Positions 2,105 to 63,983 of a DNA stretch of 64,000 nt are shown piece after piece. The position numbers and the translations under genes are program-made. Origin of the DNA: Convolutriloba macropyga (taxonomy: Eukaryota); contig NC_134470.1 in the NCBI RefSeq assembly GCF_964194025.1, positions 16,740,001 to 16,804,000 on the forward strand. The letters are read 5' to 3'. The notes under the pieces are model-generated. The model was not told where the DNA came from and ran no database searches. It saw only the letters and a list, made by a program, of their open reading frames with translations. Within the stretch, counting starts at the first letter, position 1. Each line of letters starts with the position of its first letter.

Positions 2105-3277
2105 CTATCTAGCTTTGAACTGGACGCTTTTTAAAATCAATATTCTTGACTGCAGAAGGCTTTTGAGAACTTCGCAATGAAATCTGTCATCATCACTTGT
2201 CCTCTTCAGATCTTTGAGTTGCTCTAACTGTTCTTCGTACTGTTTGCGTTTGAAGTCGAGAACTTTGCGCAATAGTATTGGTTGCTTGGGGAACTCTAAC
2301 TCGCCTCCGAAGTACTGTCCCAGAAAGTAATCGAAGTCGTTCGTCTTGAGAGCTGCTAGCATTGTTATCAACGTCCAACTTGGTTCCGCGTCTTGTATGA
2401 AGAAGAGTTCTTTGCCACAAAGTTTCTCGAACTCATTCGAAGGTCTCATTTTGTCACTGTAAGATTTGAGCGATGAGAGCAGATCTTCTTTAGTGAAAAT
2501 TACACAATCGTGTGAGTTGTTGTGAGAGATAAAGCCATATTCAATGAGGAGAACGTAATTGTTATGCGCACCGTAATGCAGAAATATTTCTGCGTCTTTC
2601 TCGATATCACTAGTCGCGAAAATGTCACAACCATCTACATTGACATCATAGTCTGTCGATACGTCAGGGCTGTGATTACACATGTCCAAATAGGGTATCA
2701 ACACCATGTTGTTCTTAATTCTAGAACAATCTAGAAGAGGGTTTAGATGTTCTGCAACGTAGAAACACCTTGTGTTCACGCAGCAGAATGCCCACATGAT
2801 ATCAGCAGCAGTTATGTCTAGAGTGTATTCGCACGCAACTCGTTCCAGCTTTCGCGAACAGACGTCGACATAATCACAGAAATCTGAGTACTTAGTGATC
2901 ATTTCGGTGGGTAGAAGTTGTCCGACTTCTTTACGCCACACGACAGGAAGCGAGAACTTCTTGGGCAAACTTTGAACAAAGTGCTTAAAATCAGATTGAG
3001 CGCCTTTATCGAATTCAATGATGAGAAACGCCATCATTAGCTGCATAGGGTCAAGCTCTTGCGGATACTGCATTAGATACTTGCCAATTTGCGTCTGTCC
3101 GATTATAAACTGATTATTTATGATAAACTTGGGGGGACAAAAGAGAATCTTTTCACCCTTTTTAATCGACCGCGATGCCCGCAGACACCTTCCACCCATC
3201 TTAGGGTTCTCGTGAATGTAGGTCGAATCGGTTTTGATGCCATTTTGGGTCGCCCAAGTGGAGAACTCCCGGGACAT
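2105..3277 (-). CDS. SETD4: SET-domain lysine methyltransferase, SETD4-like (Rubisco-LSMT family), intronless
   Basis: Motifs GRCLRASRSIKKGE, WAFCCVNTRCFY, LIPYLDMCNH, EIFLHYGAHNNYVLLIEYGF. First ATG is at 3277; the ORF-track start at 3316 is a TTG. Confidence 0.85.
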   Translation of the reverse strand: MSREFSTWATQNGIKTDSTYIHENPKMGGRCLRASRSIKKGEKILFCPPKFIINNQFIIGQTQIGKYLMQYPQELDPMQLMMAFLIIEFDKGAQSDFKHFVQSLPKKFSLPVVWRKEVGQLLPTEMITKYSDFCDYVDVCSRKLERVACEYTLDITAADIMWAFCCVNTRCFYVAEHLNPLLDCSRIKNNMVLIPYLDMCNHSPDVSTDYDVNVDGCDIFATSDIEKDAEIFLHYGAHNNYVLLIEYGFISHNNSHDCVIFTKEDLLSSLKSYSDKMRPSNEFEKLCGKELFFIQDAEPSWTLITMLAALKTNDFDYFLGQYFGGELEFPKQPILLRKVLDFKRKQYEEQLEQLKDLKRTSDDDRFHCEVLKSLLQSRILILKSVQFKAR

Positions 3278-3610
3278 CCAACCAACGCAAACTGAAACGT
3301 TCACTTCATTGATCAAGATTGGTGTTCATATAAACAACAATAGACATTTTTTGAATATCGAAAAAGCGTTCCATCTCATCAACGGTCTTCGATATATATT
3401 TAAAGTACTATAGCATAAGCATTAAAAAGAAAGTCAAACTGTATCGCTAAGCTCTGCCCCCCCCCCCCCCCCCACCAACCTGTCGCTTTAAGAGATAAAT
3501 ATCTTTAGACCATCTATATAAAAGGTTTGTTCGTACTCTAATAAACCAGTACACAACTCTAATGGTATTCTAATGACCTTAAAAACATTACTCAAAGAAG
3601 GGAAACTTAC

Positions 3611-3744: not shown

Positions 3745-4131
3745 CATGAATGACCAGTGAAGTCAATCTTAAAGTCACGCGACGGCTGCTGACAACAGCA
3801 AAAGATCACGCCCATTATATTTTAATCGATATCGGAAAATTAGCACAAAATTGCTACCAAAAATTTTGCCTCAATTATCGTTTTGTCCGGTACGACTACA
3901 CAGAAAAGCAGTTATTACGTCACACAATCTCGAATCGAGTACACAGAAGAATCATTTCCGTTATAACCCCCATTCATGGCTCCGCTCATGGGTTTTTCCC
4001 ATTTTAGCTGCTTTAGCAGCTTTAGTGAATATAATCATGTAAATAAGTTTTTGTGAATGCGGGAATTGGGAATGACAAGGGATGGTAGGCAATTAGCGGA
4101 AAAGATGAAAAAAGTAGAGCTATTGGGAAAA

Positions 4132-4273
4132 ATGAACATATTTGCGGACATGCCAACAGAGGGGGAGATAGAGGAATTGTACGGGGAGTTCTGCCAGATA
4201 GACAAGAAGGAGACTGGCACCATACCAGTTGACCGGATGACCCAACTGATGAGCAGTGCTACGAATACCAAAG
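4132..4273 (+). CDS. Calmodulin-like / myosin-light-chain-like EF-hand protein, exon 1
   Basis: MNIFADMPTEGEIEELYGEFCQIDKKETGTIPVDRMTQLMSSATNTK resembles calmodulin helix A and EF1. Ends AAG|gcaact (phase 1). The start could be 4132 or 4150. Confidence 0.75.
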
Positions 4274-4279
4274 GCAACT

Positions 4280-4423
4280 GGAATCTTTTCTGTTTGTGCC
4301 CCCAACACCCCCCCCCCAAGCTTAGTGGGTGCACACTCGCCAAATGTGCCATTTTTTTAGCTGCATAACGTACTGAGCTGCATAACGTACTGCGTGGATT
4401 GGGGGCACGAACGGATAAGATCA
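4280..4423. mobile_element. GGG-ended poly-C/poly-G MITE copy just after the exon-1 donor
   Basis: TIR ggaatcttttctgtttgtgcccc ... ggggcacgaacggataagatc; internal agcttagtggg motif shared with other copies. Confidence 0.7.
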
Positions 4424-4665
4424 GGGTAACGTTTCCTCCTCATGGCCTTTCAGACTTAAGCGAAGTATTTCAGACGACACAAAATTATGATCGAAAGGCC
4501 ACATGAGGGTCTATTTTCATAGGGAAAAAACCTCAATGCAATGGGTTTACACATTAACAGAAAAGATCGCATCAAGATATTAATAGATATACGAGATAAT
4601 ATTAATAACTGAGCACATCTCTGCTTACCACTCACAATTTTTCCATTTATTGTCTGAAAAAAAAC

Positions 4666-4821
4666 GGTTCTTCCCCATTGTAGCCCCCCTCCCCATTATG
4701 GTATGCTCGCTCGTTGGGGGGGGGGGGGTATGTGGGGCTATACGTTATACGACGACTAACCTGGGGGGATACATATGACCAATAAGCTGGGGGGGGGGGG
4801 GGGGATAATGGGAAAGACTCG
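4666..4821. mobile_element. MITE, CCCATTATAG TIR variant
   Basis: ggttcttccccattgtagccccc ... gggggataatgggaaagactc; related to 19110-19231. Confidence 0.65.
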
Positions 4822-4952
4822 AAAAAATTTAATATCACATGACTTACTCCTCCATTAGCATTTTAGTGGCCTCCGTTACCATTTTAGTGGAAAAAATTTA
4901 TTTGTCTTAGAATTATCTCCAATCCTGAATAGATCTTGGTTAATACACTAAT

Positions 4953-5111
4953 TGGATCTTCTCCGTTTGTGAGACCCCCTCCCCCAACGTTCTTCTTTGT
5001 ATCCCCCAGACGCACATGACATATTTTTACACAATGATTTGGTATGTATTGGTACGTTCTCTGTAACTGGGGGTCCTAACATAATGGGGGCGGAACAAAC
5101 GGAAAGGTCCC
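4953..5111. mobile_element. MITE copy, CCGTTTGTG TIR variant
   Basis: ggatcttctccgtttgtg ... acaaacggaaaggtccc; internal cccccagacgcacatgacatattttt. Confidence 0.65.
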
Positions 5112-5229
5112 AATCTAAAAAAGGGAGGTAGTCCAGCTACGTTCCACTGCAGGAATAGCACAGAGAACGTAGACAATTACCTTAAAATGATAAGAGGAAG
5201 CAGTATCTTAATGCCGCATGTATTGTCAG

Positions 5230-5394
5230 ACTGGACTGAAGAGAGCGTGAAGCAACTTCTCGAAGAGTGTGACGTCACACCCTGCGAGGAATACGAATTT
5301 GAGGACTTTCTTCACATCCTCACCATTTACAGAACAAAAGAGAACAACAATAAACTCATCTCCAAGCTCAAAGAAGCCGACACAGATCATAAAG
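5230..5394 (+). CDS. Calmodulin-like EF-hand protein, exon 2
   Basis: tgtcag|AC TGG: (D)WTEESVKQLLEECDVTPCEEYEFEDFLHILTIYRTKENNNKLISKLKEADTDHK(G). Ends AAG|gcaaaa (phase 1). Confidence 0.8.
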
Positions 5395-5475
5395 GCAAAA
5401 AACTTCTTTAAAAATCCCTCCTCCCCTAACCTCGTCAAAAACCAATTCTGCATTTCAGATAAGTTGACCGGTCTG

Positions 5476-6003
5476 GTATACCAATTTTCCATCCTTATTT
5501 AAATCCCCTATCATTTCGCCCCCATTTATTCACCCCTCCATCATTTCACCCCGAGGATCTTTTCCGTTTGTGCCCCCCCCCCCCCCCCCCAGTACGTTAT
5601 GCCCCCCCCCCCCTCAGTGACAGAACACGTGCCATTACATAGTAATTCATTATGTAAAAATATGGCACGAGCGTCTGGAGGGTGCAAATAATATGCGCCC
5701 ACTAAGCTGGGGGGGCACAAACGGAAAAGATCCCCCCCCCCATTTTCATCTTGTATAATTAGGACCATTAAATTAGTAAAATAATCATTGGCCATGATCA
5801 TCTCTCAGCGGCGCGTGGGACTTGACCTGAAACTATCACAATCCACCATGAAATCACGTAATCCGCTTGGTAATGACAAAACATGTCTCCAATGTCGACT
5901 GCTAACTGGCGGGTTGAAATGATAGAGGGATTAAATGATAGGGGGTGAAATAACAGTGTTAAGATATGCGGGTTTAAATGAATCGGGATGAAAAAAGTAG
6001 AAC
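5476..6003. mobile_element. Older inverted-repeat element hosting the MITE at 5556
   Basis: Left cccctccatcatttcacccc versus right gggttgaaatgatagaggg; degenerate terminal inverted similarity. Confidence 0.4.
5556..5733. mobile_element. Well-preserved MITE with perfect ~25-bp TIR
   Basis: ggatcttttccgtttgtgccccccc ... gggggggcacaaacggaaaagatcc. Confidence 0.85.
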
Positions 6004-6424
6004 CTTTAATCAGGTACCTTTTTCTCGCCGATTGCGGAGTCATCAAGAGTCAACTCGAGCTCTCCCAAAATTAAACCCAAATATTTAATACAAGGCAAAA
6101 CGGTGTTTACTGTGCAGAGTACATCTTTTCAACACAGATTTTCAAAAAAGCGCCCTAACTAAAAACCGCAAAATTTAGGGATCTTCTTTGCTTGTGCTCC
6201 CAAGCATAGTGGGCACATACAGATATTAAAAGTCTAGCAATCGATTCTTTCCTTACCGACAAGTTGTACAATTTGTAAATGACCTGGAATTCAGTCAAGC
6301 GTACCAAAAATAAATAACCAAATAGACGAAACTCCCTAAATGCTATCAAAAATTGATAAGGAGGGTACAAAATTGATTGAAAATACTTAACGCTTAACTC
6401 AAGGCCAAGTGGTACAAAAAACTG

Positions 6425-7708
6425 AACCTAACCGACTAAAGTCGGGCGAAATGCTCTCAAACGACGGTTGAGCGGTTGGCTTGGGTAGTAGTCAAGCTGG
6501 GGCTTAGGTATGCTAGCATTGGGAGGGGTGAGCGGAGTGGGTCAAGCAATGGGGGGAGGGTTGTGCGAGAGCTACGCTGGAGGATAGTAGACGGGGGTGT
6601 GTCGGTGAGGGGTTGGGTGACTGAGGGGAGGTGTCAAACTTCTAAGACAAATAAGCTCCCACTCATATCCCGAAATTCTATTCAAAACTTTGTCAATTTT
6701 GGTGGATCGGATACTCAGAGACTAAAAAGGCGTAATATTCTTTGAATGCTGCTCGGCCACTTAATGCTATACTGCTGGTCCGTACATTAGATAACGACGG
6801 GGTTAATCGCGGGACCACATGTATAACTAGAGAGTTCAACCCCTAGTTTTACTTTTGGTATATAGTTGAGTATTAAAGAAAGTTAAATGCCAATATGAAT
6901 TAATTAGTTATGTTAAATGGCATCAAATATGAACCGAGCATTAAGGGATAGAATAGTTAAAGTTATTAAAATTGAGATAGCACTAGTTAGCACAGGTTGA
7001 AATATTCTAAGTTAACTTATAACTTAGATAGAATTTAAGAGATGTTAAATTATAACTTAGAGAATTTAAGCTGAACTTACCTGATTTCAAAATTTGTGCT
7101 AAGTTAATATTTTCTGACTTAGAGAGTTCATAAAGAACTTGTCACAAAATATTCTAAGTTAAAATCTATCTCAAGTAAGCTTGAGATTTAAGCAAGGGAG
7201 CAATACGGGAGTATGATTTAAATCAGAAGTTACCAGGGACCAAATTGTGCTGGTGGTTGAGCGTGCAAGCTCCTTTTATACTTGCGGCCACGTGGTTCTC
7301 TAGTATCCTATTGGATAGAGATAGCAGTGTCGACAGAGTTACCAAGGTTAAGTTGGTGTTCTCAAAGTGGCGTGATAACATCACGTCATGGTATTCTCAG
7401 TTTGAGTTATTGATCTTAAAACAGTAGTTTATTTGAAACTACTTAGTAATTTGTTCACACGTTAAACTGGACTTTGTCCAATTCAAGTTTGTGCTTCACG
7501 CACTATAACGTAAATTCTCAAAAAAGCACTAAGGTTATCGAAAAGTGTTACTGAGTGTAGCACACTTCAGTACAATGCCCTCTGAGCGCTACCTGATCGT
7601 CCCGTTTTTGAGGACGGTCAAATGGGTCAGATGAAAAATCAGTCAGGCGAAAAATCGCATAAAAGACAGTACTAATATAATTGCTACAAACTTCGTTTCA
7701 GAGCAATA
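6425..7708. mobile_element. Helentron-like non-autonomous element (family A) interrupted by a solo LTR
   Basis: Terminal hairpin ccgac-taaa-gtcgg, subterminal IR tgctctcaaacga / tcgtttcagagca, and aattgctacaaacttcg end; same ends as 61188-61449. Confidence 0.6.
6768..7574 (-). mobile_element. Solo LTR (~807 bp)
   Basis: Termini tatactg ... cagtaca (TG..CA with one change); 4-bp TSD ATGC at 6764-6767 and 7575-7578; minus-strand CCAAT (~7310) and TATAAAAG (~7273-7280). Removing it restores the cacttaatgccc sequence seen near 61297. Confidence 0.7.
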
Positions 7709-7849
7709 AATAACCGTAACAAACAAAAACTTCCGGAGTAATAATTGAATTGCTATTATAAATTTTTTAACAGCCTTTTTGTTGGTCTTACTCATATACG
7801 CTAGTGTTGACACGTTTCTTAGAGGCAGTAGTAGCTCGAAAGAGTTGTC

Positions 7850-8335
7850 ACTCAGATTACCAGAAAATAGCCGCAATAGCTTCGTAGATCTGCAGTCCCG
7901 AAAAGAAAACAGACCAAAAAAATTTCTTTTTTAAAATGCTGAGATCATATATTTTGATTAGGAATCTGTTTAAATTATTGCTGCTTCTAATAGTTGCTCT
8001 CAATTAACCTTCAATTAGAGTGACACGCACTCACTTGAGCTTATCTCTGAGTTAAAGTAAAGAAAAGTCAGTTTCAGAGTGACGAAGTCATTTTTGAGAG
8101 TGAGGTGAGTTATGCGTGACCAAAAACTTAACCGCGCGAATGAACAAAAAACTCACTCCAATAAGAGTGAAAAATAACGTCACGCTCGCAATTCAGTTGA
8201 AATTGCATGAACGAATGAACAAAAAGCAGATTTTGATTGTGACGTCATATGGTCGTAACAAAACTCTTGACAATGAAATAAAAAAAACCAAGAGAAGGCC
8301 AATAATAGACCCAGCTATCGCTGTGCGGCTATTAA
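7850..8335. mobile_element. Helentron-like non-autonomous element (family C)
   Basis: Subterminal IR aatagccgca ... tgcggctatt; core shared with copies at 49397, 50763 and 56075. Confidence 0.65.
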
Positions 8336-8942
8336 TAAGAAATGATGTTATTACAGAAAAATAGCTTTCATAGATGGTCTAAGAAATTGTATTTTATTTA
8401 AAATCTGACTCAAAATAATAAGTTTAGGAATGTCGACTAAAGTAGTGCGGTGTGAATCTTATGCTGGGCGAAGGGTCCTCTAGCTTCTAACTGAATAATT
8501 GAAGTTGAATGGTGTAGAAAAGTCGGGATTTCAACTCAAATAAAACAATTTAGATCATCCAAAAATTCCTATTCGCCGAAAATTTCTAGCAAAAATTCTA
8601 AATTCCTTAAAACTAGGCACAAAAAAAAAACAAAACACCACCGGGACAGAAAAAATGCATTAAAAAGACATGAATTAAATGCTAAAATTTTTGTTTGAGC
8701 AGAGAAAGCAATGTTTTACATCAAAAGAAACTTATCCTTCCGACATTGGTCTTATCTTTACGTTCAAAAGGGCATAAAATAATAGTTTAATAATAATATA
8801 TATAGTTTAATAATAATAATAATAATATTATGCTTCAATGATAATGCGAATTTTTGTCACATTTTCATAGGTTAGTCATTAGATTACGTTGAATGATGTT
8901 AGGAAAAGAAATGAATGACAAATTAATGGGGAGAAATTTCAG

Positions 8943-9094
8943 GATTTCTGAGCCCAGCCATCCTGGAGGAAAAGATGAGAGAACTGGACAAGAGCTTTGA
9001 TGAGGACGACATCAAGTACTGGGTAGACGAAACAAGCGTGAACGAGGCCGGCGAAGTGAACTACGAAAAGTTTTTGGAAAATTACACCAAATAG
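8943..9094 (+). CDS. Calmodulin-like EF-hand protein, exon 3 (terminal)
   Basis: tttcag|GA TTT: (G)FLSPAILEEKMRELDKSFDEDDIKYWVDETSVNEAGEVNYEKFLENYTK*. The spliced CDS is 142+165+152=459 nt, giving 152 aa (calmodulin-sized). Confidence 0.8.
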
Positions 9095-9309: not shown

Positions 9310-11307
9310 TCAATTTACCGAAATATAAGCAGATGGATTTCTGATATTAACAAATTTTTTACTCGATACGCTTTTAGCTAACATCTGACTCAGCTGCAGT
9401 TTTAAACCTCGCAATTTTTTGGTTGATTTGTGTTCTCCGAGATTTGCATCTTCTTCGTATTCTATGTCTAGGTCTTTAGCTAACCCTTCAATCCACGATT
9501 TTTCTTTGGACACCTTGTGGTTTCGATGTTCTATTTGCTCAATCTCTTGAGCTATTGTTATTCTTGAACTCAATGTTCTAACTAGTTTGGCATCTGCTGT
9601 AATGGTTTCAATGCTATCTTCGTGTTTGTTTAAAGAAGTGACAATTTTGACGAACAGCTTCACTTCGGGTGGTGAGACCAGCATTATGGACGTACCATCT
9701 AAACCACTTCTAGCGGTTCTGCCGCTGCGATGGACATAGGTCTCGTATGTTTTGGGCAAATGGTAATGCAAAACATGGCGCACGTTTTTAATATCTAAAC
9801 CGCGCGCCGCTACGTCAGTACAAAACAATACACTATTCTCGGACTTCGAAAAGGCTTCTAAGTTCTTCAAACGTTGACGTTGTTGCATGTGGGCATGCAA
9901 GCATCTGCAGTTGAACTCTAAAAGCGTGAATAAGGAATGTAAGCGACGAATATGGTCAATAGAATTAGCAAAAACAAGTTTTCGTCCTTCTGGTAACGTT
10001 TGGCAGCAATAGTAAAGGTAGAGATCCTTCTCGTTAGGAGCACAGAGAATCTTTTGTTCGCTCAGTTTCTCAGCAGTCACATCTTTTCTCGTAATATCAA
10101 CTATTTTCAGGGTGTTGCAAAATGAGAGCTTAGCCAGCACTGGTGCAATCGCTGATATTGTTGAATCGGTTGAAGAGTTTTTCGCAGAGGGATGCTGATT
10201 TGCAACAGTCAAAGTGGCGCTAAGCACTAATGTTTGACGTTTCCACTCAACTCTACTTTCACTCTCTGTTTCCTCCTCATTCGCCTTAGATTTCGCATAA
10301 ACAAATTTCAAAATACTCTCAAGGTCTTTAAAGTGTCCCGCTTCGCACAATCGATCAGCTTCGTCTAACACCAAACATCTGATATTGTTCAGGTTATCTA
10401 AATGCTCTATATTTTTGGACTGTAACAGCTGATTGAGTCGCCCTGGTGTAGCAATAATTATTTCAGGGGAGCCCTTCCGCAATATTCTTTCCTGCTTGTG
10501 CACTGCCAGGCCACCCACTATTGTTACGTGAGCAATTTTGGGCGTAATATCAGCAACCAATGCTTTCACGTGTTCCGATACCTGAACTGCTAGCTCTCTG
10601 GTGGGAAGAAGTATTAACACCTTCGGCTCTTTCCAATTGTTTTCTGTTGATTCGCGACATTCGAAAATCCTTTTTAAAGCAGGAATGACATAGGCTAAAG
10701 TCTTGCCGCTACCAGTTTCTGCAGCACCAATGATGTCAAATTTTCCGTCAATTGCTATTGGCAGAACTTTTCGTTGAATTTCAGTTGGTTGCAAAAAATT
10801 CAATCTTAACAAATTTTTTAACAAAGGATCTGGGACACCGCAAATTTGAGTCCAGACCTTGTCCAAATCCTTACCCTCTATAGCTTTTCTCGAGCCATGG
10901 CTATTTATATTTAACCAATTTTCATGTGAAACTGATTTGTTTACCTTCTGTTTTACAGAAATTTTTTTCTTCCTTTTAATAGGCCCTTTTTCATCGATTA
11001 CACTATCAGCAACTGTTTCGTCGATTACAATATCAGTAAGCAAATCGTTTCGCTTAGCTGCAACGTCACATATTTCCAAAGTATTCACTTCATGAATCGC
11101 ACTGTTTTCAGCAATTTTGCTGACATCTTGGCCAGAAGTGTCTAATTTTCTCTTCTTCTTCTTTGGCGGCACCGACTCCGGTGCTTCAGCTGGTTCTGCT
11201 TGTTCGTCACTTTCAACGTACTCTTCAATTCCAAAGCAGAAAACTGCGGACTCATCATCACTAACGCCAAAATTATCATCCAATACAACTTTTTTCCATT
11301 TACCCAT
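9310..11307 (-). CDS. DDX24: ATP-dependent DEAD-box RNA helicase DDX24/MAK5, intronless
   Basis: Q motif PTEIQ, AETGSGKT, PTRELA, TPGRL, DEAD, SAT, TDVAARGLDI, YVHRSGRTAR. DDX24-typical VFANSI, LHAHMQQRQRLKNLEAF and N-terminal GKWKKV...EE. Confidence 0.93.
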   Translation of the reverse strand: MGKWKKVVLDDNFGVSDDESAVFCFGIEEYVESDEQAEPAEAPESVPPKKKKRKLDTSGQDVSKIAENSAIHEVNTLEICDVAAKRNDLLTDIVIDETVADSVIDEKGPIKRKKKISVKQKVNKSVSHENWLNINSHGSRKAIEGKDLDKVWTQICGVPDPLLKNLLRLNFLQPTEIQRKVLPIAIDGKFDIIGAAETGSGKTLAYVIPALKRIFECRESTENNWKEPKVLILLPTRELAVQVSEHVKALVADITPKIAHVTIVGGLAVHKQERILRKGSPEIIIATPGRLNQLLQSKNIEHLDNLNNIRCLVLDEADRLCEAGHFKDLESILKFVYAKSKANEEETESESRVEWKRQTLVLSATLTVANQHPSAKNSSTDSTISAIAPVLAKLSFCNTLKIVDITRKDVTAEKLSEQKILCAPNEKDLYLYYCCQTLPEGRKLVFANSIDHIRRLHSLFTLLEFNCRCLHAHMQQRQRLKNLEAFSKSENSVLFCTDVAARGLDIKNVRHVLHYHLPKTYETYVHRSGRTARSGLDGTSIMLVSPPEVKLFVKIVTSLNKHEDSIETITADAKLVRTLSSRITIAQEIEQIEHRNHKVSKEKSWIEGLAKDLDIEYEEDANLGEHKSTKKLRGLKLQLSQMLAKSVSSKKFVNIRNPSAYISVN

Positions 11308-11396
11308 AATTCTAAAACCAAAACGAATAAGGTTAAAAGATATAACTTAAAAATTGAGCAACAAGGAGTAAAGTAAATTCGCAATAAATTTCAAAA

Positions 11397-15969: not shown

Positions 15970-18137
15970 TTATTATTATTATAGGTTTACGCACCATTTA
16001 CAAACTCAAAAGTGCATTCAAAATCAAATATTAAATAAAAAAAGTTTTCAGTTTTCTGCGATAATCAAATTCATGGGATATTAGTTTCATCTCAAAAGGC
16101 AACTTATTCCATTCGAAAGGAACAGCAAAACTGAACGATCTTCGCCCAAATGCAGTTGTGACAATAAGAACCTTCCAATTGTATGCATATTGGCATCTAC
16201 ATATATACATCGGAATTTTCCACGGATGGTGAACTAAACGGTGACCAAAAAGTAGAATTTTGTAGAGGATACGTTGTTTCATCGGTAGCCAATGAAACTC
16301 TTTGATAGTTTGCTCTTGGTGAACCAGGTGATAGCCTAAAAATGAGACGACATGCTGATTTCATTATACGCTGTAATTTCTGTATAAAATACACCGGTTG
16401 TCCATAGTACAGTGAGTTGCAGTAATCTAATTATTACCCGAACTAACTCGATCAACGACTTTCTGCCGACGGTATCTCTGATCGAATAAATTTTTCGCAG
16501 CAAATAACATCTACGGCACACAGAACTAACTTGCTTTGTATATGAAAGTCTGGAATCTAAGTTGAAGTCCTACAGGGTAACATTGTTACAAAAATTGGCA
16601 TCTGTTGGAACTTCAATACCGCCATTTAAACTATTCTTTCTACTAATAAAAATGTATTCAGTTTTATTCGTTTAACAGGAGCTTAGCACCACTTTTGCAG
16701 AGTAGTAAGTATCCAATCCAAAGCCCCCTGTTTTATCGAGGCGTGGTAAACAAAATTGATAACAGTGTCATCGGCATAAAAAAGATAATTGACATCAAGA
16801 CGTTCAAACAGATCTTCCAGAGGGACAAGATAGCTTGAAAAAAGAACGGGACCTAGAACAGATCCTTGAGGAACACCCGTTTTTATAGTTCTTGGCATCG
16901 AATACTCGCCATCAATCAACACTTTTAGAGATCTACTACTCAGATAACTATTTAAAAAGCTAAGCACTTTATCTTTGAAACCCAAACTTGTTTTAAGAAT
17001 TGAAAGAAGTAATTCATGATCGAGAGTGTCAAAAGCAGCTGATAGATAGGGTCCAATATGAAAAATGCTCTTTGTCCTATCTAAATTGAGGAGCAAATCA
17101 TTTGTCACCTTATTCAGCGCTGTTTCTGTAGAAAACTTCCTGTAGGCACTTTGGTATTTGCTAAAGAGACTATTCTTTTCGAGGTGTTCACGCATTTGCA
17201 TGAAAGCCGCCCGTTCTAATAGTTTTGAAATGTAAATTAGGTTTGAGATAGGTCGATAATTTGAAAAATCTTCATTGTCAGAATTTGCTTTCTTCAAGTG
17301 GGGCTTAACAATGGCCCTTTTAAAGGACTGGGGGAAACATCCCGCCTTCAGTGAAAGACTAAGAAGTTTCAGGAGGTCGAGAAAATAATCTGGAAATGAT
17401 TTTACAAGATGTGTTGGAATGATGTCCAGTGGAGATGTACTGTTTGACGACGCCGAAATCAAATCTCTAAACTGACTTATCGAGAACTCCGTGAACGAAT
17501 TCATTTAGTTAACTTCAGTTTTCTGAATTTCAGGACCCATCGCAGTGGGAATCGATGCAATAATACTTTCCACTTTAGATATAAAGAACTCGTTGAAGTC
17601 GTTTGCAAGCTGTTTTTTGTTTTCATATTTCGGGAGCTGTTCTACATCTTGACCAAGAAGCAACTTAAGGGTGACAAGCTTTTTACGGCTACAATTTTCC
17701 ATCAACGCAATCTCAATGTATAATCTACGCTTCTCTAAGAATTTTTCAAAATACATATGGGTAATATTTTCATATTCAGATTTCAGTACAGATGTTTTCG
17801 ACTTTGTATTTACGCTCTGCTTTTTCTTTTCTTTCGTTTCAATCTCAAAAGCTCGTCGTCAAAGAATGGGCATTGAAGTATAGTAAATGTTTTTATTTTG
17901 AGTGGTAGAACGGAATCCAAAATATTCTCTTCAAACCTTAGATACATATCCCATGCTTCATCAATACTTGAGGCAACATCAAACTTTAAGCACAACTTCA
18001 ATAACTTAATAAAACCTTCAGAGTCAAACTTCTTCCAATTTCAATACATCAAACATTGTTGAGATTTGCGTTGTTTCACACTGCTGAGCGAGAAACAAAT
18101 AAACGAATGGTCCGAAGAAGTAATGAAGCTATTCGAT
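15970..18137 (-). mobile_element. 5'-truncated L2/CR1-group LINE nested in the LINE above
   Basis: RT NYRPISNL, LSAAFDT, GVPQGSVLGP, YADD; (TAA)n tail at 15970-15982; 8-bp TSD TACAGGTA at 15962-15969 and 18138-18145. Confidence 0.85.
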
Positions 18138-23864: not shown

Positions 23865-26800
23865 ACAACGTACACCTCTCGGACTCGATCCGTTCTGTGA
23901 CAAACCTACACTCTTCGCTGGGAGAAATGGAGAGTGCAATATAAATTGTCATTGTTGGCAAAAGAAAATATTATTCTCGATACACTACTTGGACCCAAAC
24001 CAGAGATGGTGGAACTTCCGCTCGAACCAATATACGAAGAAACTATCATTGATGCTTCCGCACAATCGGAGAGAGGGAGAAAAGAACGCCCGTAGCGCGC
24101 GGCAGAAAATGATTTGGCAAAGCAAATGCCAACGGCTAATTGAAGTCGGTATTATTTGTGGTGACAAACCGTGGCCATTGGCGGATTGCAAAACCGTATC
24201 TCTACTCTACCTAAGCATCGGGGTAGAAGGTCGCCGCATGCTGAATTGCAAGAACCCGCATATCATGATCGATACCCTTGCTACTGTAGACTTCTGGAAG
24301 ATCGTGGAAGAGGCAATCATCCGTCCTCGAAACATAAATTTCGATTGTCATGTTTTCTTGATTACGAAACAGCTTCGGGGAGAAACATTTCTATGGAAAT
24401 TTAAAGGAATTGGCAGAGAACTGCGACTTTGAGAACAAGCAAGAGACCCTGATACGCGATGTCTACATCACTAATCTGATGGACCCCGAAATCCAAAAGG
24501 AACTCCTTAAACAAACTGTTGAACCGCGTCAGGCATTAGAGCTAGCAATCAACATAGAACTTGGGATGCGAAATGAACATCAAATCCAACAGCACAACAA
24601 AATTGTCATTCCGGCCAACGTCAACGCAATCCAATTCGCCAATAATTCTCGAACCCCGAATTGGCAAAATATTAATAATGCTCCGAGACAAAACAACCAT
24701 TCCACACTCTACTGTTCAAACTGCGGAAGACTTTGGCTACCGAATCAGCGCGATAATTGTATCGCAAAGGGTAAAAACTGCAACAATTGTTTTCTTCTCA
24801 ACCATTTTGCGAAAGTTTGCAGAAGACAAACAATGTGAAACCCCAGAATTCTAAGAAAAAGATGGTAAGCGTTGTGGAAGAGGAACCGCATCCTGAGGAC
24901 TCAGTGAATTTCCTACAACCAGCCAAGCCCTACGAATTGGGTTACAGTAGCGGAGAAGACAATACGGTTGCGGTGATCGAGATTGCAGTAGAGAAAGTAG
25001 AACCCCTCAACATGCCTATTCAAATTGGCAATATTAACACTACACTACACGTGGACTCTGGTAGCACATGCAGTATTCTCAACCGTTCACTCGCATCGCG
25101 AGTGGTACAAAGCAGTCCTCGCGCTTTCTGGATCAGGGAAAAGGTGTCTCCACAACTTCGGACCTTGTCGGATGAACCAATTTAGGTCGAAAGAAAGATG
25201 CAATCTCCAATAACGAATATGTGTTGGACTTGTGATTCAGCGACATTCACAGTTGTAGCTGACGGACTATAATCTCTAATCGGCCATGACTTGTTTGACC
25301 AAATTGGACTAGCTGTGATTCAATCTACATCCCAAAAAGGTAATCGTGTCAATAACATTTCATCTCCAGAATTCTAAGAACAAATCGCAAAAACTTTTCC
25401 TGAATCGCGTATCGGAAGATTTCACAAAGATTTCCAACCTAGACACCAAAAGGTGTACGTATTCCAATTAATTTGCAAGAAAAAGTCAATATCGAACTTA
25501 AAAAAACTGTTAGACGAAAAACATAGCATAAAACTTAAAAGTTGTTTTGATAAATACTTCATTTCACCAATAGTGGTCATCCTAAAGAAAGATCAAACTA
25601 TAAAGCTTGCACTGGATTCAAAAGTATTGAACAAAAGTGTTCACAAGAATAAATATCAGATGCCAAATATTGATACGCTAATCGAATCCATTTCCCAGCA
25701 AATTAGTGCTCCCGCGTCGCAAAACACTAATCATTGTAACTTTAACATCACTAGTAGTGATATGACGGGCACTTACAGATTTCAAACAGGATTTTACGGG
25801 CCCAGAGATATGCCTGCAGAAATTCCAAAAACCATGGACTACACGCTAATTGGTCCAAAGAATACATATAGTTTTTTAGACGACATTTTGATCGTTAGCA
25901 AAAGTTCTCTGGATGAACATAAAAGCTATGTATTGAACTGTCTTAAACGTTTAGTCGATGGAAATCTTAAGATAAATATTCCGAAATGCCATTTTGGAAA
26001 GTTAGAAATTGATTGGCTGGGATACCATGTCTCGAAATCAGGTATTTCGCACCTCGATAGTAAAACAGCTGCAATCTTAGCACTTGAAGCTCCGAAAACT
26101 CTAAAGAAACTCCGCTCTTTTCTGGAGTCGGTTCATTACATCGGGAAATTTATTCCTAATCTTGCAGAAATTAGTCATCCCCTCCGCCCATTGCTGAAAA
26201 AGACATCAGAAATTATCTGGACAGAGGAACATGAGAATTATTTCAATGAATTAAAAAACCGCATCGCGAACGCAACCGAAAATAGCCACTATAACCCGCA
26301 ACTCGAAACACTTGTAAAATGCGATGCGTCTCGTTCCGGTCTCGTAGTTGCACTTAAACAATTGACAGTTGATGGGTGGAAACCAATCGCACTTACGTCT
26401 CGATTTTTAAATTCTTGCGAAGAACGCTATAGCGTAAACGAACTTGAACTTCTGGGTGCAGTGTGGTCAATTGAATATTTTAAAAAATTACTTGTATGGA
26501 AGAAATTTTACATTAATTACGGATCATACTGCCCTTCTATCTATCATGAAAGAAAAATAATTGAATAAATCATTCAACAGCAGATTAATCCGCTGGATCG
26601 ATCGTTTACTCCCATTTCAATTCGACATTGAACATCTTCCCGGGGCGAAAATGGGTTTAGTTGACTATATTTCTAGACACCCGTCTCAAAATCTAAAAAC
26701 AGTCTGCGCGTGTGATGAAGAATTCATTGTAGCCAAAATGAAGTTAATTTCTACATCTATTAATTCATTGGAATTAAATAACACAGAATCTGCATCTCAT

Positions 26801-29800
26801 TTACACAAATAATTAATAGCACACAACCTCGCATTACAAATCACACCTAAAAATGAGGAACACAATCCTACAATACAAACCACACCTAAAAATGAGGTAA
26901 GCTATTCCGCATTACAAGTCACACCTAAAACTGCGGCCAACAAAAAGGCGATAAACTTAATTAACACACACGCGGCACGAGTATATAAACATGTTTATTA
27001 TAATTCCCCTGCTCCACAAAAATAGCCTCAAATTCAACTTGTAATTTAAACAATTTCAATTATGTAGACCCCACGTCACAAAATACACTTAACACTTCTC
27101 TTGCTCAGCGAAATACCAGTAAGCGTAAAAAATTATTCCAAATTCGGAATGAATTAGCTCTCGCGCCGCGCGAGCTTCAAATTATTCAATCTAAAATCCC
27201 GCCAATTAGGAGACATTCCTCGAATATATTTGAAAATCAACACACAAAAATAAAATCAGTGATTTTTGCCTCTAGACATCCTACAATTCAGTCGTACAAT
27301 TTAAATTCAAAAAATTCTTTATCATCTAAATCATTGTCAGAAACAAACTACATAAACAAAATCAGTAACATAATGCCTTCCAAAAAGCGCACCACTCGCG
27401 TTTGTTTTAACGACGCATCTCGCACGGCAAATCAACAGTCATCTAATCAAAACGCAACTTGCCCCGCATGTCAGCGTTCTAATTCGCCAGGTAATTCCCG
27501 CACCGAAAGTCAGCGACAAGATTTTTCAAACAACACCCGCGCAGCAGGTTCCCCACCAACAACAACGCCAACATCTCCGGCTCAATCATTCAACGCAAGT
27601 GCCCCTCTCACACCCAGCCCACATGTACCCACATTTGAATACATCGCCTCAAAGATTTTTAATAAATCTCTAATTGCGTCACTGACCAGCAAGGACGGAG
27701 TCTTAAAAAAGGTCCAGGACTGCATCCTCTCACTAACAATGAAAGTCGCCTCAAAGCCCTAAACCCATACATACACTCATATTGGAGGAATCTCCATGTA
27801 CGTTCCGGGTGTGTATGTATCGATCAAAAGGTCGCCATACCGAACGTTCTGCGAGAGGCGACGACTGACGAAATACACTCCAGCTATCCGGACACATGGG
27901 GTATGATATGCATGGCCACGCACTGCTGGTGGCCATACATGCACCGCGAGCATATAGTTAAATCCACAGAATGCAAGCCTTGCGCGGTGATTGCTAAGAA
28001 TCTTAAATCGGTTATTGCCGCTAAGCAATTTAATCCTCACAAACCGTGTGTTGAACCAAATCAAGAACTTCAATTGATTTTGGAGGTTCAATTTTTGATG
28101 AAAAAGGTAATGAAATTTACTTCTTAGCAGCTATCGACCGTTTTTCTAAATACCCTACTGCACGTATTTATGACAAGGCTAACGGACCGAATGCTCTAAA
28201 GTTTTTGGACACGTATATTGAAAATCGCGGAATTCCACGATCTATTCGACTGAATCAAGCAAAATGTTTGGTTGGCAATCAAGTACAGACCTTTTGTAAC
28301 AAAAAAATATCGACAAAGTTGAATGATCATCGTGCTATTGGATTCGTAGAAAGACTTATTGAAACGATGAAAAATAGACTTGCATGTATTAAAGAGGAAA
28401 AATCGCATGCTAACGCTTTTCATGTAAAGCATGCATTAATGATAACAATACACCCATTGCGAATATGTAACCAAAGAACAACAAAAATCTCTCCTTTTGA
28501 AGCACACTTTGGAAGAAAACATAATACCCCGCTGATCGTGATATCGACAACGCCTAAATTGTCAAATCTCACATATGAAAACATTGGAAACGACTGTTTA
28601 GATGAAGACACAGTGATGCCGGAAGAAATCCATCCAGATGACAAGTGGGTGAACGGGTACCGCAGTGACATAGAGGTTGAATTTGGGATGTCAAGAGCGA
28701 CGCAAGAGGCGAAAGCAAGAGAACGGGCCAGCTTGACGGAAAATCACGTTTCCTGCGAACGACGGCCACTCGCCCCATTCCCCTCAAAGAACGAGCGGTG
28801 GAACTCAACATAGCCCGGAAAATCCATGGAAAACGCCGATCGAAGAAAAAATTGGAGGAATTATATGGAGTACTCGCGCCTGGCTCACATATCCTGAAAG
28901 TTAGCCCGACGACTTCCATAATCAAAGAACCCGGAAAACTTCTAGTAACGCTCAGGAACAGCGATATTGCGAAATTCGGAACGCAATTGCAAACCTCCGA
29001 GCGGCAAACCCCGTTAAAGGCGTACGCGGACCACAGGGGATCGAGATCGGGAGAAAAACTGGTGGAAGAGTTAATTCAGAGTCACGTCGAGGAATTCACA
29101 AGGAAACAAAAGGGAGATAAGAAAAAGAAACTTCGTAAGCGTGATCCGGGCAGCGGGGTATCCTCCTCAAAATCGAATGTCACACGTGCGATGCCAGGTC
29201 GAGTTCCCAAAATTCCGAACTTTCTCGCCATCCGAAATCAGCAGCCACAAGTCAGCACAGTTTCGCATAGCGTGCACTCAACAAACTCCTTCGCAAATAC
29301 ATCTGCCGCAGCGAAACGACCACAGGGATCATCAGACCGCAATCGGCGAAGCCCATTACGGCTTTAATAGCCCATCTCCTGACTCAACAATCGCAGCGCC
29401 CCCCAAACGACCTCAAAGAGGGGTTGACGTTAAAAATTACCAGCATCCACCCGAGTCCATTGTGGAAACGGTCCAAAATATTGCGGAACAACAGCCTGCA
29501 GAGACCAATATCTTCCCAGTAATTGGAGAGGTTTCGCCACTCGCCACGCGAGACCCTGCTCTTCACGAAATCGATACTCCAACGCTAGCCCATTCAATGA
29601 CTGTGTTTGAAGCCGAAGGACACAATTTGAACGAATGGGACAATTAGAAACTGAATTTCTCTAAAAACTTTGTCAATTAAGACACTTATAATTTAATAGT
29701 ATTTTTTTAGCTATGATAACCAGTACATATATTGCTATTATTTTGTTAACCGGGGACCAAGTACTAATTTGTAAATATTGTTATTAATTTTACGCATTCG

Positions 29801-38500: not shown

Positions 38501-40554
38501 TAATCAAATCAGGAAATTCAAATTAATTTTGGGTGACCAATTATCAATGAAAAGGAACACCAATTTTTTTCTATCTGGAGTTGATAGATGATCAAAGTAC
38601 CCTATATTCAAATTATTTGGAAAAAGCAAATGATCCCAAACTATTCGAACAATTTGCAGGATATATACAAAAGGACTCATGATGTGCTATGCTCCATTAG
38701 ACTTAATGGATCAGGGCATTAAACCGGCAATCAGGTTGAAACATTATGCAAATGCAAAAATACTCACTTTACAGAAACCTATATTTTTATTCACGGCGCT
38801 ATGGATTTATGAGAACATTTCATGCAAAAAATTAAAAGGTTCCCTGCTTGTTTAACGAAGAAAAGTTTAATATTTAGCTACACATGAAAAATGATTTGTT
38901 TTCTGTTGTGTACCAAGTACGCATCTGCAAAAAAAAACAAAAAAACATTTCGTTTTTCGAAAAACACTTCGCTATAAAACCAAATACTGCATTAGGCAAA
39001 ATTTCTACGATGCCAAGGTCATCAAAATCTAGCAAAAGAAAATAATAAATAATTTTTAAGACAATGAAGAAGGTGTATTCCCTTAGGACTCTTTCGCTCT
39101 GCGAATGCCTGTCGTCCAGTTGCGATCAAAGATAGGGCAGTCCAACTCAAATCGGTACAAAAATTTCCAGGCGACAAGAGATCAAGGAAAATTTAAAAAG
39201 GCTTCTTTGAACTATTGGCAGCAGGTTCTACAATAAAGAAACCAAGTAGCTCAACATCACAAAAAATAAACTGAGAAACCACCAGTGACGGTAAATACCT
39301 GCAAAATCTTAAAAAAAATGGCTCACGGAAGAACTGAAAACCGTCAGTCAAAACATTCGCTGAACGACGTGGCCACCTCAATGACAAAACTACTGAGGAA
39401 AAAATCTTTCCGCACCCTAATTTACCAAGAAGCGAAAAGGAGAAAAAGAGAATGCGACAAAAAAACGTGAATTAGTTAGCGGAGTGTCGCCTGGCAAAAG
39501 CAACATTTCACACGCGATGCAAAATCGCCTACCCAAAAAAGCCTAATTTTGCTTGGCGAAATGACGCTAACTTTTCAACATCACTACCAGCCCCACAAGT
39601 GATTTTGCCCCCGCAGTGAAAAGGCCTAGTTATGCTCTTCATCAGGTGAAAACTTCTAGCGAGTCACCGAATGTTGCTTCTAGATCCAGCGGCCGCACTT
39701 GTCTTAGCCCCAATTACTACGAGTATTTATCTGCATTGCAAAACCCCAATAAGGTTCCCATTCAACACACGCGATCAGACGATGTTTCAAATTTTCAACC
39801 AAAGTCTGCCCTTTTCAATTCTGTTGTTGAAACGATTCAGGATAGAGCAAATCTAACCCAGAACAAGTCAACTTTTCACCAACTATCGGTGCAGTATCTC
39901 CAGTGGACCCACGCATACGATCTCTGAGCGAGCAACGCGACTCCACTCCAGAATGCCTTCTTTTAATTTCGGCAGGCGAGGCAGAATTCCCAATTGACAA
40001 TTATTGCACTCACTGTCAAGCATAAACATTTCGAAGTTTCAACTTGTCTACAGCTATTCATAACCACGATGTATAGTGATGATATTTTTAACGGGCAAAT
40101 ATATAATATTTTTCTGTAAAGATGTTGTTATTGAAGCTTCGCGTCTCTTTCATTTCAATTCAAGAAACAGAATGGTATGTCATACATATGTCACACATGA
40201 AGTTTTTTGCTGTAAAATTTTAGTTGATTTCTTATATTAGTTCAATTTACATAACCCCTAAGTATTATTGATGGTTTTTTTTCAGAATTGTTCATTCACC
40301 TGGCTCTTTTAATTTCGCGCTGCTGGACAAATGTCTGCTCATATTTTATACTGATTTGCAAAACTGACTAACTTTCATAACCACCTTTTTGCTAATCAAT
40401 TTAACTTGACTAACTTAAGCCTTGCACTTGCGCCGCGTTTTCAAATAAGAAAAAATAAGATCCAGAGTACTGAGTCTGAAAGTTGTACCCGCACCGGGAG
40501 ATCAATTGTAGAAAGTACCTTCTTATTACACACCGATTATTCTCCCGTACGACA
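32559..40554 (+). mobile_element. Older, heavily decayed Mag-like Gypsy element related to the 23477 element, with internal duplication
   Basis: Gag RWEQLRIKFKLAILA (~32935); protease tactccggaagtgcatgcagc (YSGSACS); RT/RH remnants (DGWTPIAFTS); integrase remnants 38080-39000; 3' LTR 40178-40554 ending gtacgaca; weak 5' LTR ~32559-32882. Confidence 0.8.
36053..37960 (+). repeat. Second copy of 33342-35710 (gag to RNase H) with internal deletions
   Basis: Both begin ttctttaagactaaacagttaaaaa and end gcgaaacccatttt; near-identical ORFs 34043 versus 36755. Confidence 0.9.
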
Positions 40555-48243: not shown

Positions 48244-48417
48244 TCAGATATATATGCGATGGAAATCGTTGGCTCCGAATGCGTGACTGCACTTGGGACA
48301 TTTCCTCTGCCGAGTGTCGTACCTCCTCTTAATGCAGGCATTGCAGAACACGTGGTAGCATTTAGTCAGCACTGTGTCTATTTGTTTCACGTTGCAACAC
48401 GGACACGTCAATTGCGA
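48244..48417 (-). CDS. BRE1: E3 ubiquitin ligase BRE1 (RNF20/RNF40), terminal RING exon
   Basis: ttttag|[57 protein letters not shown], the diagnostic BRE1 C-terminus. Confidence 0.96.
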
Positions 48418-48808: not shown

Positions 48809-48910
48809 CTTGTACATTCGGATCTCCTCTCTGAGAACTTCATCGGCCTGTGCTATGACATTGTTCCTCTTCTGACGCTCCAGTTTCCGCCTCAGTCTAT
48901 CAATCTCATC
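48809..48910 (-). CDS. BRE1: BRE1 coding exon
   Basis: tttgag|DEIDRLRRKLERQKRNNVIAQADEVLREEIRMYK|gtacca; 102 nt, phase 0/0. Confidence 0.9.
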
Positions 48911-49071
48911 CTCAAATCACAATGCATCATAAAAACTTCAATACTTTGTTCACTGCAAAATGTAAACGATTATTGGTGAAAAGTACGCAATAAAAGGTCA
49001 CAAAAAAGTTTAATTATTAGGAACTATAGCCCTGAGGAGGCTCTAACACAAAACTTTTTCAAAAAGCTAAC

Positions 49072-49212
49072 CTCTTTGCGCTTGATGGCAAGCTCCACCT
49101 CCTGCTGCTCCTCGACTTTCTCTGCAAGTGCCTTCTTTGCATCTTCATAACAGGAACTGATCTTCTCAATCTGCAGATTCTGCTCAAACACTGTTTGGGC
49201 GCCTTCAGTCGC
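49072..49212 (-). CDS. BRE1: BRE1 coding exon
   Basis: gttcag|ATEGAQTVFEQNLQIEKISSCYEDAKKALAEKVEEQQEVELAIKRKE|gttagc; 141 nt. Confidence 0.88.
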
Positions 49213-54704: not shown

Positions 54705-54851
54705 CTTTTTCTTGAGTGTTTCGGACATTTGTGTCCTAAGATGTGCCTCTTTCTCAATAGCATGGTAGCTGTTCATCAGGTGTAGCTCCTTGTCCTCCAA
54801 CCTCCTTACCACTTGCACCTGACTGGTCACTTGTTGCTGAAGGGTTATCAC
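54705..54851 (-). CDS. BRE1: BRE1 coding exon
   Basis: gtacag|VITLQQQVTSQVQVVRRLEDKELHLMNSYHAIEKEAHLRTQMSETLKKK|gtactc; 147 nt; resembles the RNF20 coiled coil. Confidence 0.92.
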
Positions 54852-55735
54852 CTGTACACATTACAAAGAACTGTCCTTGGACGAAATCTACAAAATTTCT
54901 TTAAATATTCCGACACCAATTTTAAATGTAGGGAGAGCACTATATGCTCGACTGTTTTTTGTAAGGTCAATTTTGATCAATCGATATATTCAATGAAGAA
55001 AATTTTAAGTGGTATCATTTCAAAGTCAATGAAGCGTACAAACGTTGAGGATTTTTTCCGAATTTCACTTTTTGTTGAGTCAACGATGTTTAAAACTTTG
55101 CTAAGTTCCCCTACGGCTTCCGACATTATGACAAATACATTCTGTTACTTTTCCAAATCGTCTTACCTTCAAATTTTTTTAGCATTGAACAATTATTTGC
55201 AAGAAATTTCCAAGCTTTGGGCAACAGGTGACAACTTTTGGTGCCCTTCAGTTAATTTTGTAGCATTAAATGATGCTCTACAATTACTGGCTTAATAAGT
55301 GGAAGAGTTATTCAGGTTTCGATGTCCTAGCCCAGTTGTCTAACATGTTTTTTTTCAGAAGTCCGCTAAAATGTTTGTCCGCGTTAATATTTCTATTTTG
55401 AAACATTTTAGACCTAAAAGATCTGGTAACTACAGAGCTACCAGCATCTTTGTTACCAATTATATGCATCCATTGACTTTGAAATTTTTTAACAGATTTT
55501 CACAATATTTGAAAATCGAACTTTTTTGAAACTGTCACGTCGGATTCAATCATAACCAATTGTTCAAAATAACCAAAATTTGAATGTCCCATTCTTCACA
55601 CCAGGAGTGTAAACAGTAAAATGCATTGTATGTTTAAACAAATCAGTCAAAGAAATCTTATCAAATTTCGAGCTATCGTTGCTGCCATTACACTTGATAT
55701 TTACAGATTACAGCCTAGACGGGACTAAGAAGCTC

Positions 55736-63792: not shown

Positions 63793-63983
63793 AAAAAAGA
63801 CAGCTCAAAAATACAATCCAAATCCTTTGGATTGTAAAAAAGGAGAGCGGCTAAATAATAGACGTTGAGAGGCTGAGGGCGGCTATTAACAATGATACCA
63901 ACTAATATAGGAACGAATCGTCTTTGTTGCAAGAGCGTCAATCATCGAAAATTTTGATCGAAAGCAGTGACGTCAATATTCAC

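Follow-up and report, generated by a model that had tools for sequence, protein, structure and literature searches.

Two probable U2-type GC-AG introns in a small EF-hand gene of the acoel Convolutriloba macropyga

U2-type introns that begin with GC instead of GT account for 0.37-0.86% of introns in human, mouse, fly, worm and Arabidopsis (PMC1557818), and for approximately 1% in human by another count (PMC3167603). The GC donors of these model species are compensated, and are stronger than the two donors described below (PMC1557818). GC-AG introns of the U12 type have a GCATCC donor (PMC1557818). Most introns of the tunicate Fritillaria and its relatives are non-canonical (PMC13326754), and introns derived from transposons have been reviewed (PMC11282704). 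For acoels, our literature search returned no paper that treats splice-site usage. The present analysis concerns a stretch of 64,000 nucleotides from the acoel Convolutriloba macropyga (C3:16740001-16804000, referred to here as the window), in which both coding introns of a small EF-hand gene, RefSeq LOC142336004, open with GC. Whole-genome searches took in the 1,175,981,408-base assembly.

The GC donors had been claimed from the window's letters in an earlier reading, referred to here as the original prediction, and they were confirmed in the DNA, in the public isoform X1 model and in the codons split by the two joins. LOC142336004 was the best of four clusters when exon 2 served as the sole query of an exhaustive protein search. 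Its isoform X1 (P0005; XP_075240560 and others, four accessions) is a protein of 152 amino acids, identical to the three-exon model originally predicted. The exon pieces 4132-4272, 5232-5393 and 8945-9091 have stop-free translations that equal P0005 residues 1-47, 49-102 and 104-152, while the split codons G/AC and G/GA supply D48 and G103 (here and below, a slash marks the border of exon and intron). RefSeq joins the gene at introns 1 and 2 through GC sites only, and the five model accessions and two protein isoforms recorded at the locus suggest transcript support. The joined protein contains an EF-hand pair (Pfam E 6e-14) and was placed among small EF-hand proteins in the protein atlas. The gene is single-copy, as P0005, searched against the genome, matched only its own locus and one distant intronless EF-hand open reading frame (ORF). 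The parts of the gene are:

3976 to 3991, plus strand: alternative first coding exon of isoform X2, encoding MAPLM and the first base of Glu (P0001 residues 1-5; G/AG gives E6)
3992 to 4159, plus strand: isoform X2 intron, 168 nucleotides (nt), GT..AG, donor ATGG/GTTTTT, acceptor CCAACAG/AG, acceptor pyrimidine content 0.38
4132 to 4273, plus strand: isoform X1 exon 1, running from ATG to base 1 of Asp48 (P0005 residues 1-47)
4274 to 5229, plus strand: intron 1, 956 nt, GC..AG, AAAG/GCAACT..TGTCAG/AC, mostly repeats
5230 to 5394, plus strand: exon 2, from bases 2-3 of Asp48 to base 1 of Gly103 (P0005 residues 49-102), unique depth about 16
5395 to 8942, plus strand: intron 2, 3548 nt, GC..AG, AAAG/GCAAAA..TTTCAG/GA, with a purine-rich tract
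8943 to 9094, plus strand: coding part of exon 3, stop TAG at 9092-9094 (P0005 residues 104-152), Pfam EF-hand_7

We consider it likely that both are ordinary U2-type GC-AG introns with rather weak sites, in a real gene of three exons and one alternative first exon. The arrangement looks like the known minor GC-AG class, cut by the normal spliceosome, rather than a new splicing code, and we infer that both introns are removed from the RNA at the GC sites. The standard 5' end of U1 small nuclear RNA would pair with AAG/GCAA across a C-A mismatch at +2, after which the later splicing steps would proceed as for GT-AG introns. In each intron, GC would most likely have arisen from GT by a T-to-C change.

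In Logan contigs from four runs, representing two samples of one study, the two donors and two acceptors are spanned with zero letter differences, which indicates that the GC is not an assembly slip. It had been allowed that the raw data might read GT; the DNA contigs of both samples read GC. Contig depth is approximately 13-20 on the exons, which are unique, and climbs to as much as ~1e6 on the repeats within the introns. The runs are of genomic DNA, unspliced at the exon borders, and may belong to the assembly's own project, so the agreement excludes a consensus error rather than showing independent biology.

Two homologues from marine metatranscriptomes (P0004 and P0008, ~46-48% identical) run uninterrupted across both joins, as T-D-W-T-E and K-G-F-L-S-P, and keep the two residues that are encoded only by the GC joins. 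P0003, an ORF fragment from another genome assembly, loses its match directly after the same Gly as the intron 2 join, a break that would fit, and hints at, an older origin for the intron 2 site. The original prediction saw no usable GT near either boundary. This stood for intron 2, where the frame runs from the donor into a stop at 5409 before any GT is reached. It did not stand for intron 1, where frame-compatible GTs lie downstream at 4292, 4325 and 4346, ahead of a stop at 4366. The gene model could thus be wrong at one or both joins, with intron 1 starting for instance at the GT at 4292 inside the end of a transposable element, or the gene could be an unexpressed relic; GTTTGT donors are in use elsewhere in the genome, and the data at the locus derive from DNA only. 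However, none of the three GTs is preceded by G at -1, and each would yield Tyr or Asn with 6-24 extra residues in place of the homologue-conserved Asp, which only the GC donor yields. Intron 2 offers no GT alternative, three open exon frames and an EF-hand pair are kept, and the only joins in RefSeq are the GC ones. A faulty model or a relic is therefore improbable in our judgement.

Turning to the quality of the sites, the GC donors match the U1-complementary consensus from -2 to +4 (AAG/GCAA), with C or A at +5, and the AAAG/GCAA that they share is the core of the GC-donor consensus (PMC1557818). Scored against CAG/GTAAGT, they reach 6/9 and 5/9, compared with a mean of 6.2/9 for 31 local GT donors (taken from loci L032-L090 and the window), and are thus average for this genome and seem to lack the compensation that is usual for GC donors. 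The GT donors have A at -2 in 20/31 and G at -1 in 26/31, so that the AG/G originally attributed to every donor is simply the ordinary local consensus, and the donor of the isoform X2 intron (ATGG/GTTTTT) departs from it. T occupies +3 in 9/31 GT donors, with GTTAGT and GTTTGT recurring, a share that seems high for an animal as an impression rather than by comparison with published figures. All three non-GT donors found (two in the EF-hand gene and one in an HSP70 gene) follow exonic AAAG, compared with 3/31 of the GT donors. The acceptors of the EF-hand gene have pyrimidine contents of 0.62, 0.31 and 0.38, against 0.69 ± 0.13 in the intron sample described below, bearing out the weak pyrimidine tracts that had been predicted. 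Without a G at +5 and with pyrimidine-poor acceptors the sites are weak, so context probably helps their recognition, and short exons, the exonic AAAG and other surroundings may be what compensates.

The wider sample comprised introns of HSP70, CCT and tubulin genes, located by Pfam matches in the genome, rebuilt with intronless paralogues as guides and then inspected by eye; the manual calls lean in part on known motifs of mortalin and the CCT subunits. A pair of duplicate genes and a contig with 54% G+C were excluded. In this small sample, biased towards old conserved genes, 34 of 35 introns were GT-AG with a recognisable AG/GTAAGT-like consensus, one was GG-AG and none was GC-AG, which lends no support to the generally relaxed splice code that the original prediction proposed. 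The one-sided 95% upper bound on GC-AG from 0/35 is ~8%, with which an ordinary rate of 0.37-0.86% is compatible. An automatic call of GC-AG in an HSP70 gene on C5 proved false, the real donor being CAG/GTTAGT, and every case in which automatic calling had returned 'no candidate' was GT-AG by eye.

Two observations were made along the way. A mortalin-like multi-exon HSP70 gene occurs twice on C5 (75854069-75868118 and 77306185-77310848), 1.45 Mb apart, and the exon patterns of the two agree over the part compared. The small unplaced contig C3903 (18600-22053; L057, L071) has 54% G+C and bears an HSP70 gene whose introns are short; its source may be an algal symbiont rather than the worm, and the gene was left out of the sample for the contig's composition and this possible origin.

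The single GG-AG intron lies in an HSP70 paralogue (C13:13843218-13843843, minus strand, inside L067). It is 626 nt long and reads AAAG/GGCTCTTTTTTGAAG ... CTTTGAAAAAGAGCTCTGATCAG/AT, with an acceptor pyrimidine content of 0.38, and its join K/D-V-C-P-L-S-L-G aligns exactly to intronless HSP70 paralogues. The intron has ends like terminal inverted repeats, and the 15 bases at its start are paired with a box that lies 8 nt ahead of the acceptor (free energy, dG, -18.1, z -3.3). The EF-hand introns are filled with miniature inverted-repeat transposable elements (MITEs), of which the following were delimited (strand not assigned):

4280 to 4421: MITE whose start lies 6 nt beyond intron 1's GC donor, with inverted terminal repeats GGAATCTTTTCTGTTTGTGCCCCC / GGGGGCACGAACGGATAAGAT (I6, I11) and raised contig depth
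4951 to 5114: more decayed MITE of the same family, in intron 1, with an inverted repeat (I8) of 29 nt, 72% complementary
5555 to 5733: MITE with perfect 25-nt inverted terminal repeats GGATCTTTTCCGTTTGTGCCCCCCC (I3, I2, I10), lying in a larger inverted-repeat element at ~5497-5944

It could accordingly be proposed that the EF-hand introns belong to a transposon-derived, hairpin-ended, non-canonical class in which pairing of the ends replaces a good donor, given the MITE content of both, the element so close to the first donor and the paired GG-AG intron in the same genome. Pairing of the first with the last 30 nt, measured against shuffles, argues otherwise: intron 1 gave dG -5.7 (z +1.6) and intron 2 gave dG -9.8 (z -0.6), which is no better than shuffles, as for GT-AG controls, and far from the values of the GG-AG intron. 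None of the inverted repeats in the EF-hand introns joins the two intron ends, and the break in P0003 hints at an older intron at the intron 2 site. We regard a hairpin-ended class as extremely improbable for these two introns.

Several further observations on the repeats are recorded here. The MITE at 5555-5733 has a summed contig depth of ~5e5 compared with ~17 on the exons; with summed depths of 5e5-1e6, these elements are among the genome's commonest repeats. The members of the family (4280-4421, 4951-5114, 5555-5733 and 5497-5944) have ends GGATCTTTTCCGTTTGTGCCCCC and long C/G runs, and are mutually nested. A direct repeat, CA(G)ACTGGA, is found at +2..+9 of intron 1 (4275-4285) and at the acceptor into exon 2 (5227-5235), probably by chance. 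Its interpretation as a transposon target site was rejected as unsupported, since its GGA is accounted for by the MITE end and D-W-T is already present in the homologue. An Rfam search of the window gave no match.

The original prediction also raised altered pairing by U1 and U6, which inspection of the U1 5' end and the U6 ACAGA box did not support. All five full-scoring U6 copies that were read carry the canonical GATACAGAGAAG box, with ACAGAGA intact. The main form of U1 is likewise canonical, with the ATACTTACCTGG 5' end in 12/25 high-scoring copies and other 5' ends in the remaining 13/25. Position 7, which faces donor +2, was A throughout: a whole-genome search for a non-A base there (BCCTGGCGTCGGCCGTCCCC) had 0 hits, compared with 17 for the A form, in a pattern search that is blind to copies whose body differs from the 19-mer.

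The variant 5' ends include TTGATTACCTGG (4 copies), AAAACCTGG (2), ATTTATACCTGG (2) and ATACTAACCTGG (1), and the variant loci (L004-L007, L019, L020, L022 and L025-L030) are spread over C15, C7, C10, C5 and C1. Upstream of many variant copies there is a motif like CTTCTGAATTTAA, while the canonical copies have TTTC or AATC before them. Pairing is predicted to be perfect between ATACTAACCTGG and GTTAGT donors, and the A-rich U1 forms are predicted to pair with GTTTT donors; the sample contains donors of both types.

Some of the evidence weighs against two ordinary GC-AG introns. The contigs at the locus are derived from DNA only; public poly(A) RNA-seq exists for Convolutriloba macropyga (BioProject PRJEB75559, specimen txConMacr14; genome note, PMC13650328). 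The GC donors are uncompensated at +5/+6, unlike typical GC donors (PMC1557818). Moreover, at model-species rates, a gene with GC-AG at both of its two coding introns would be improbable (1.6e-5 to 7.4e-5 per such gene), and even at the ~8% upper bound the figure is still only ~0.7%.

An alternative is that the acoel spliceosome has relaxed its recognition of +2 genome-wide, so that GC, GA and GG are all raised as in Oikopleura and Eurytemora, with the EF-hand introns forming a subset without paired ends. It would account for GC at two of the three annotated introns of one gene, with poor +5/+6 positions and pyrimidine tracts, and for a GG-AG intron among only 35 from conserved genes. The AAAG before every non-GT donor, the low mean score and frequent +3 T of the GT donors, and the altered 5' ends of more than half of the U1 copies also lean in its direction. 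However, such relaxation sits poorly with a sample of 34/35 GT-AG and 0/35 GC-AG introns, with a canonical U6 and with the lack of any U1 copy changed at position 7. The sole non-GT intron of the sample has paired ends resembling terminal inverted repeats, which both EF-hand introns lack, and no paper on non-canonical splicing in acoels was found in the literature. Relaxed recognition of +2 across the genome is thus doubtful, and we think it similarly unlikely that Convolutriloba macropyga routinely splices weak, uncompensated G-N donors, including those without paired ends, as a tolerance of poor sites proper to the acoel spliceosome. Were there such tolerance, it might be aided by the numerous U1 genes whose 5' ends are altered. 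Taken as a whole, the original interpretation is partly supported: its altered U1/U6 pairing and its general relaxed code found no support, and the uncompensated donors, the pyrimidine-poor acceptors, the AAAG before non-GT donors and the one GG-AG intron speak in part for it.

Around the EF-hand gene, a SET-domain ORF (2108-3325, minus strand, 406 codons) stands head-to-head with it, and an apparently intronless DEAD-box helicase ORF (9313-11346, minus strand, 665 amino acids from ATG) lies just downstream. Retroelement ORFs for reverse transcriptase and RNase H, at 16683-17504 (minus strand), 25378-26565 (plus strand) and 28055-28810 (plus strand), separate the EF-hand gene from a BRE1 gene. 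Three exons of the latter were placed on human BRE1A by a PDB sequence search, and Pfam gave no match for single coiled-coil exons of BRE1. Its exons are:

48247 to 48417, minus strand: last coding exon of BRE1, with the RING finger (human BRE1A 919-974, E 1e-26 to 9e-29; Pfam zf-C3HC4), acceptor TTTTAG/TCG
48809 to 48916, minus strand: BRE1 exon region with donor AAG/GTACCA, an open frame with the acceptor inside it (human BRE1A 883-917, contiguous with the match of the RING exon)
49072 to 49212, minus strand: probable BRE1 exon with donor GAG/GTTAGC, an open frame whose length fits BRE1A ~837-882, with no significant match of its own
54705 to 54860, minus strand: BRE1 exon region with donor AAG/GTACTC (human BRE1A 787-836, E 2e-5)

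The sequence CAGGTGAAT occurs twice in the window, at 40294 and 63978, and since the last BRE1 exon ends at 48247, only the copy at 63978 can belong to BRE1.

With this locus a well-known minor class of introns gains two examples, both of which the public annotation already contains. The locus is of value as a control, in that it offers GC introns without end pairing and without the usual compensation of the donor. If RNA confirms that they are used efficiently, they would tell whether tolerance of odd donors depends on a hairpin or is general, and if routine splicing of weak donors were true of this species, the EF-hand gene would be a clean, hairpin-free test case.

Compared with known systems, the likeness to tunicate and transposon-derived introns lies in the GG-AG intron of the HSP70 paralogue, with its paired ends like terminal inverted repeats, and in the MITE filling of the EF-hand introns; unlike those systems, the EF-hand introns have unpaired ends and keep AG acceptors, in a genome where GT-AG is the rule (34/35). 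There is some likeness to an invertebrate genome with recurrent non-GT donors that start with G, for which a U1 variant was proposed as partner. In contrast to the excess of GA-AG introns there, the EF-hand gene has GC only, the sample holds 0/35 GC or GA, and no U1 variant was found at the base facing +2. A U12-type reading was rejected, since the same GC..AG ends come with the donors GCAACT and GCAAAA instead of GCATCC. Against the U2-type GC-AG class, the EF-hand introns differ in +5/+6 bases other than a compensating G/T, in their purine-rich acceptors and in making up both coding introns of one small gene, while they agree with it in the GC..AG ends, the AAG/GCAA core, the lack of U12 motifs, the standard U1 and U6, and in-frame joins that restore conserved residues.

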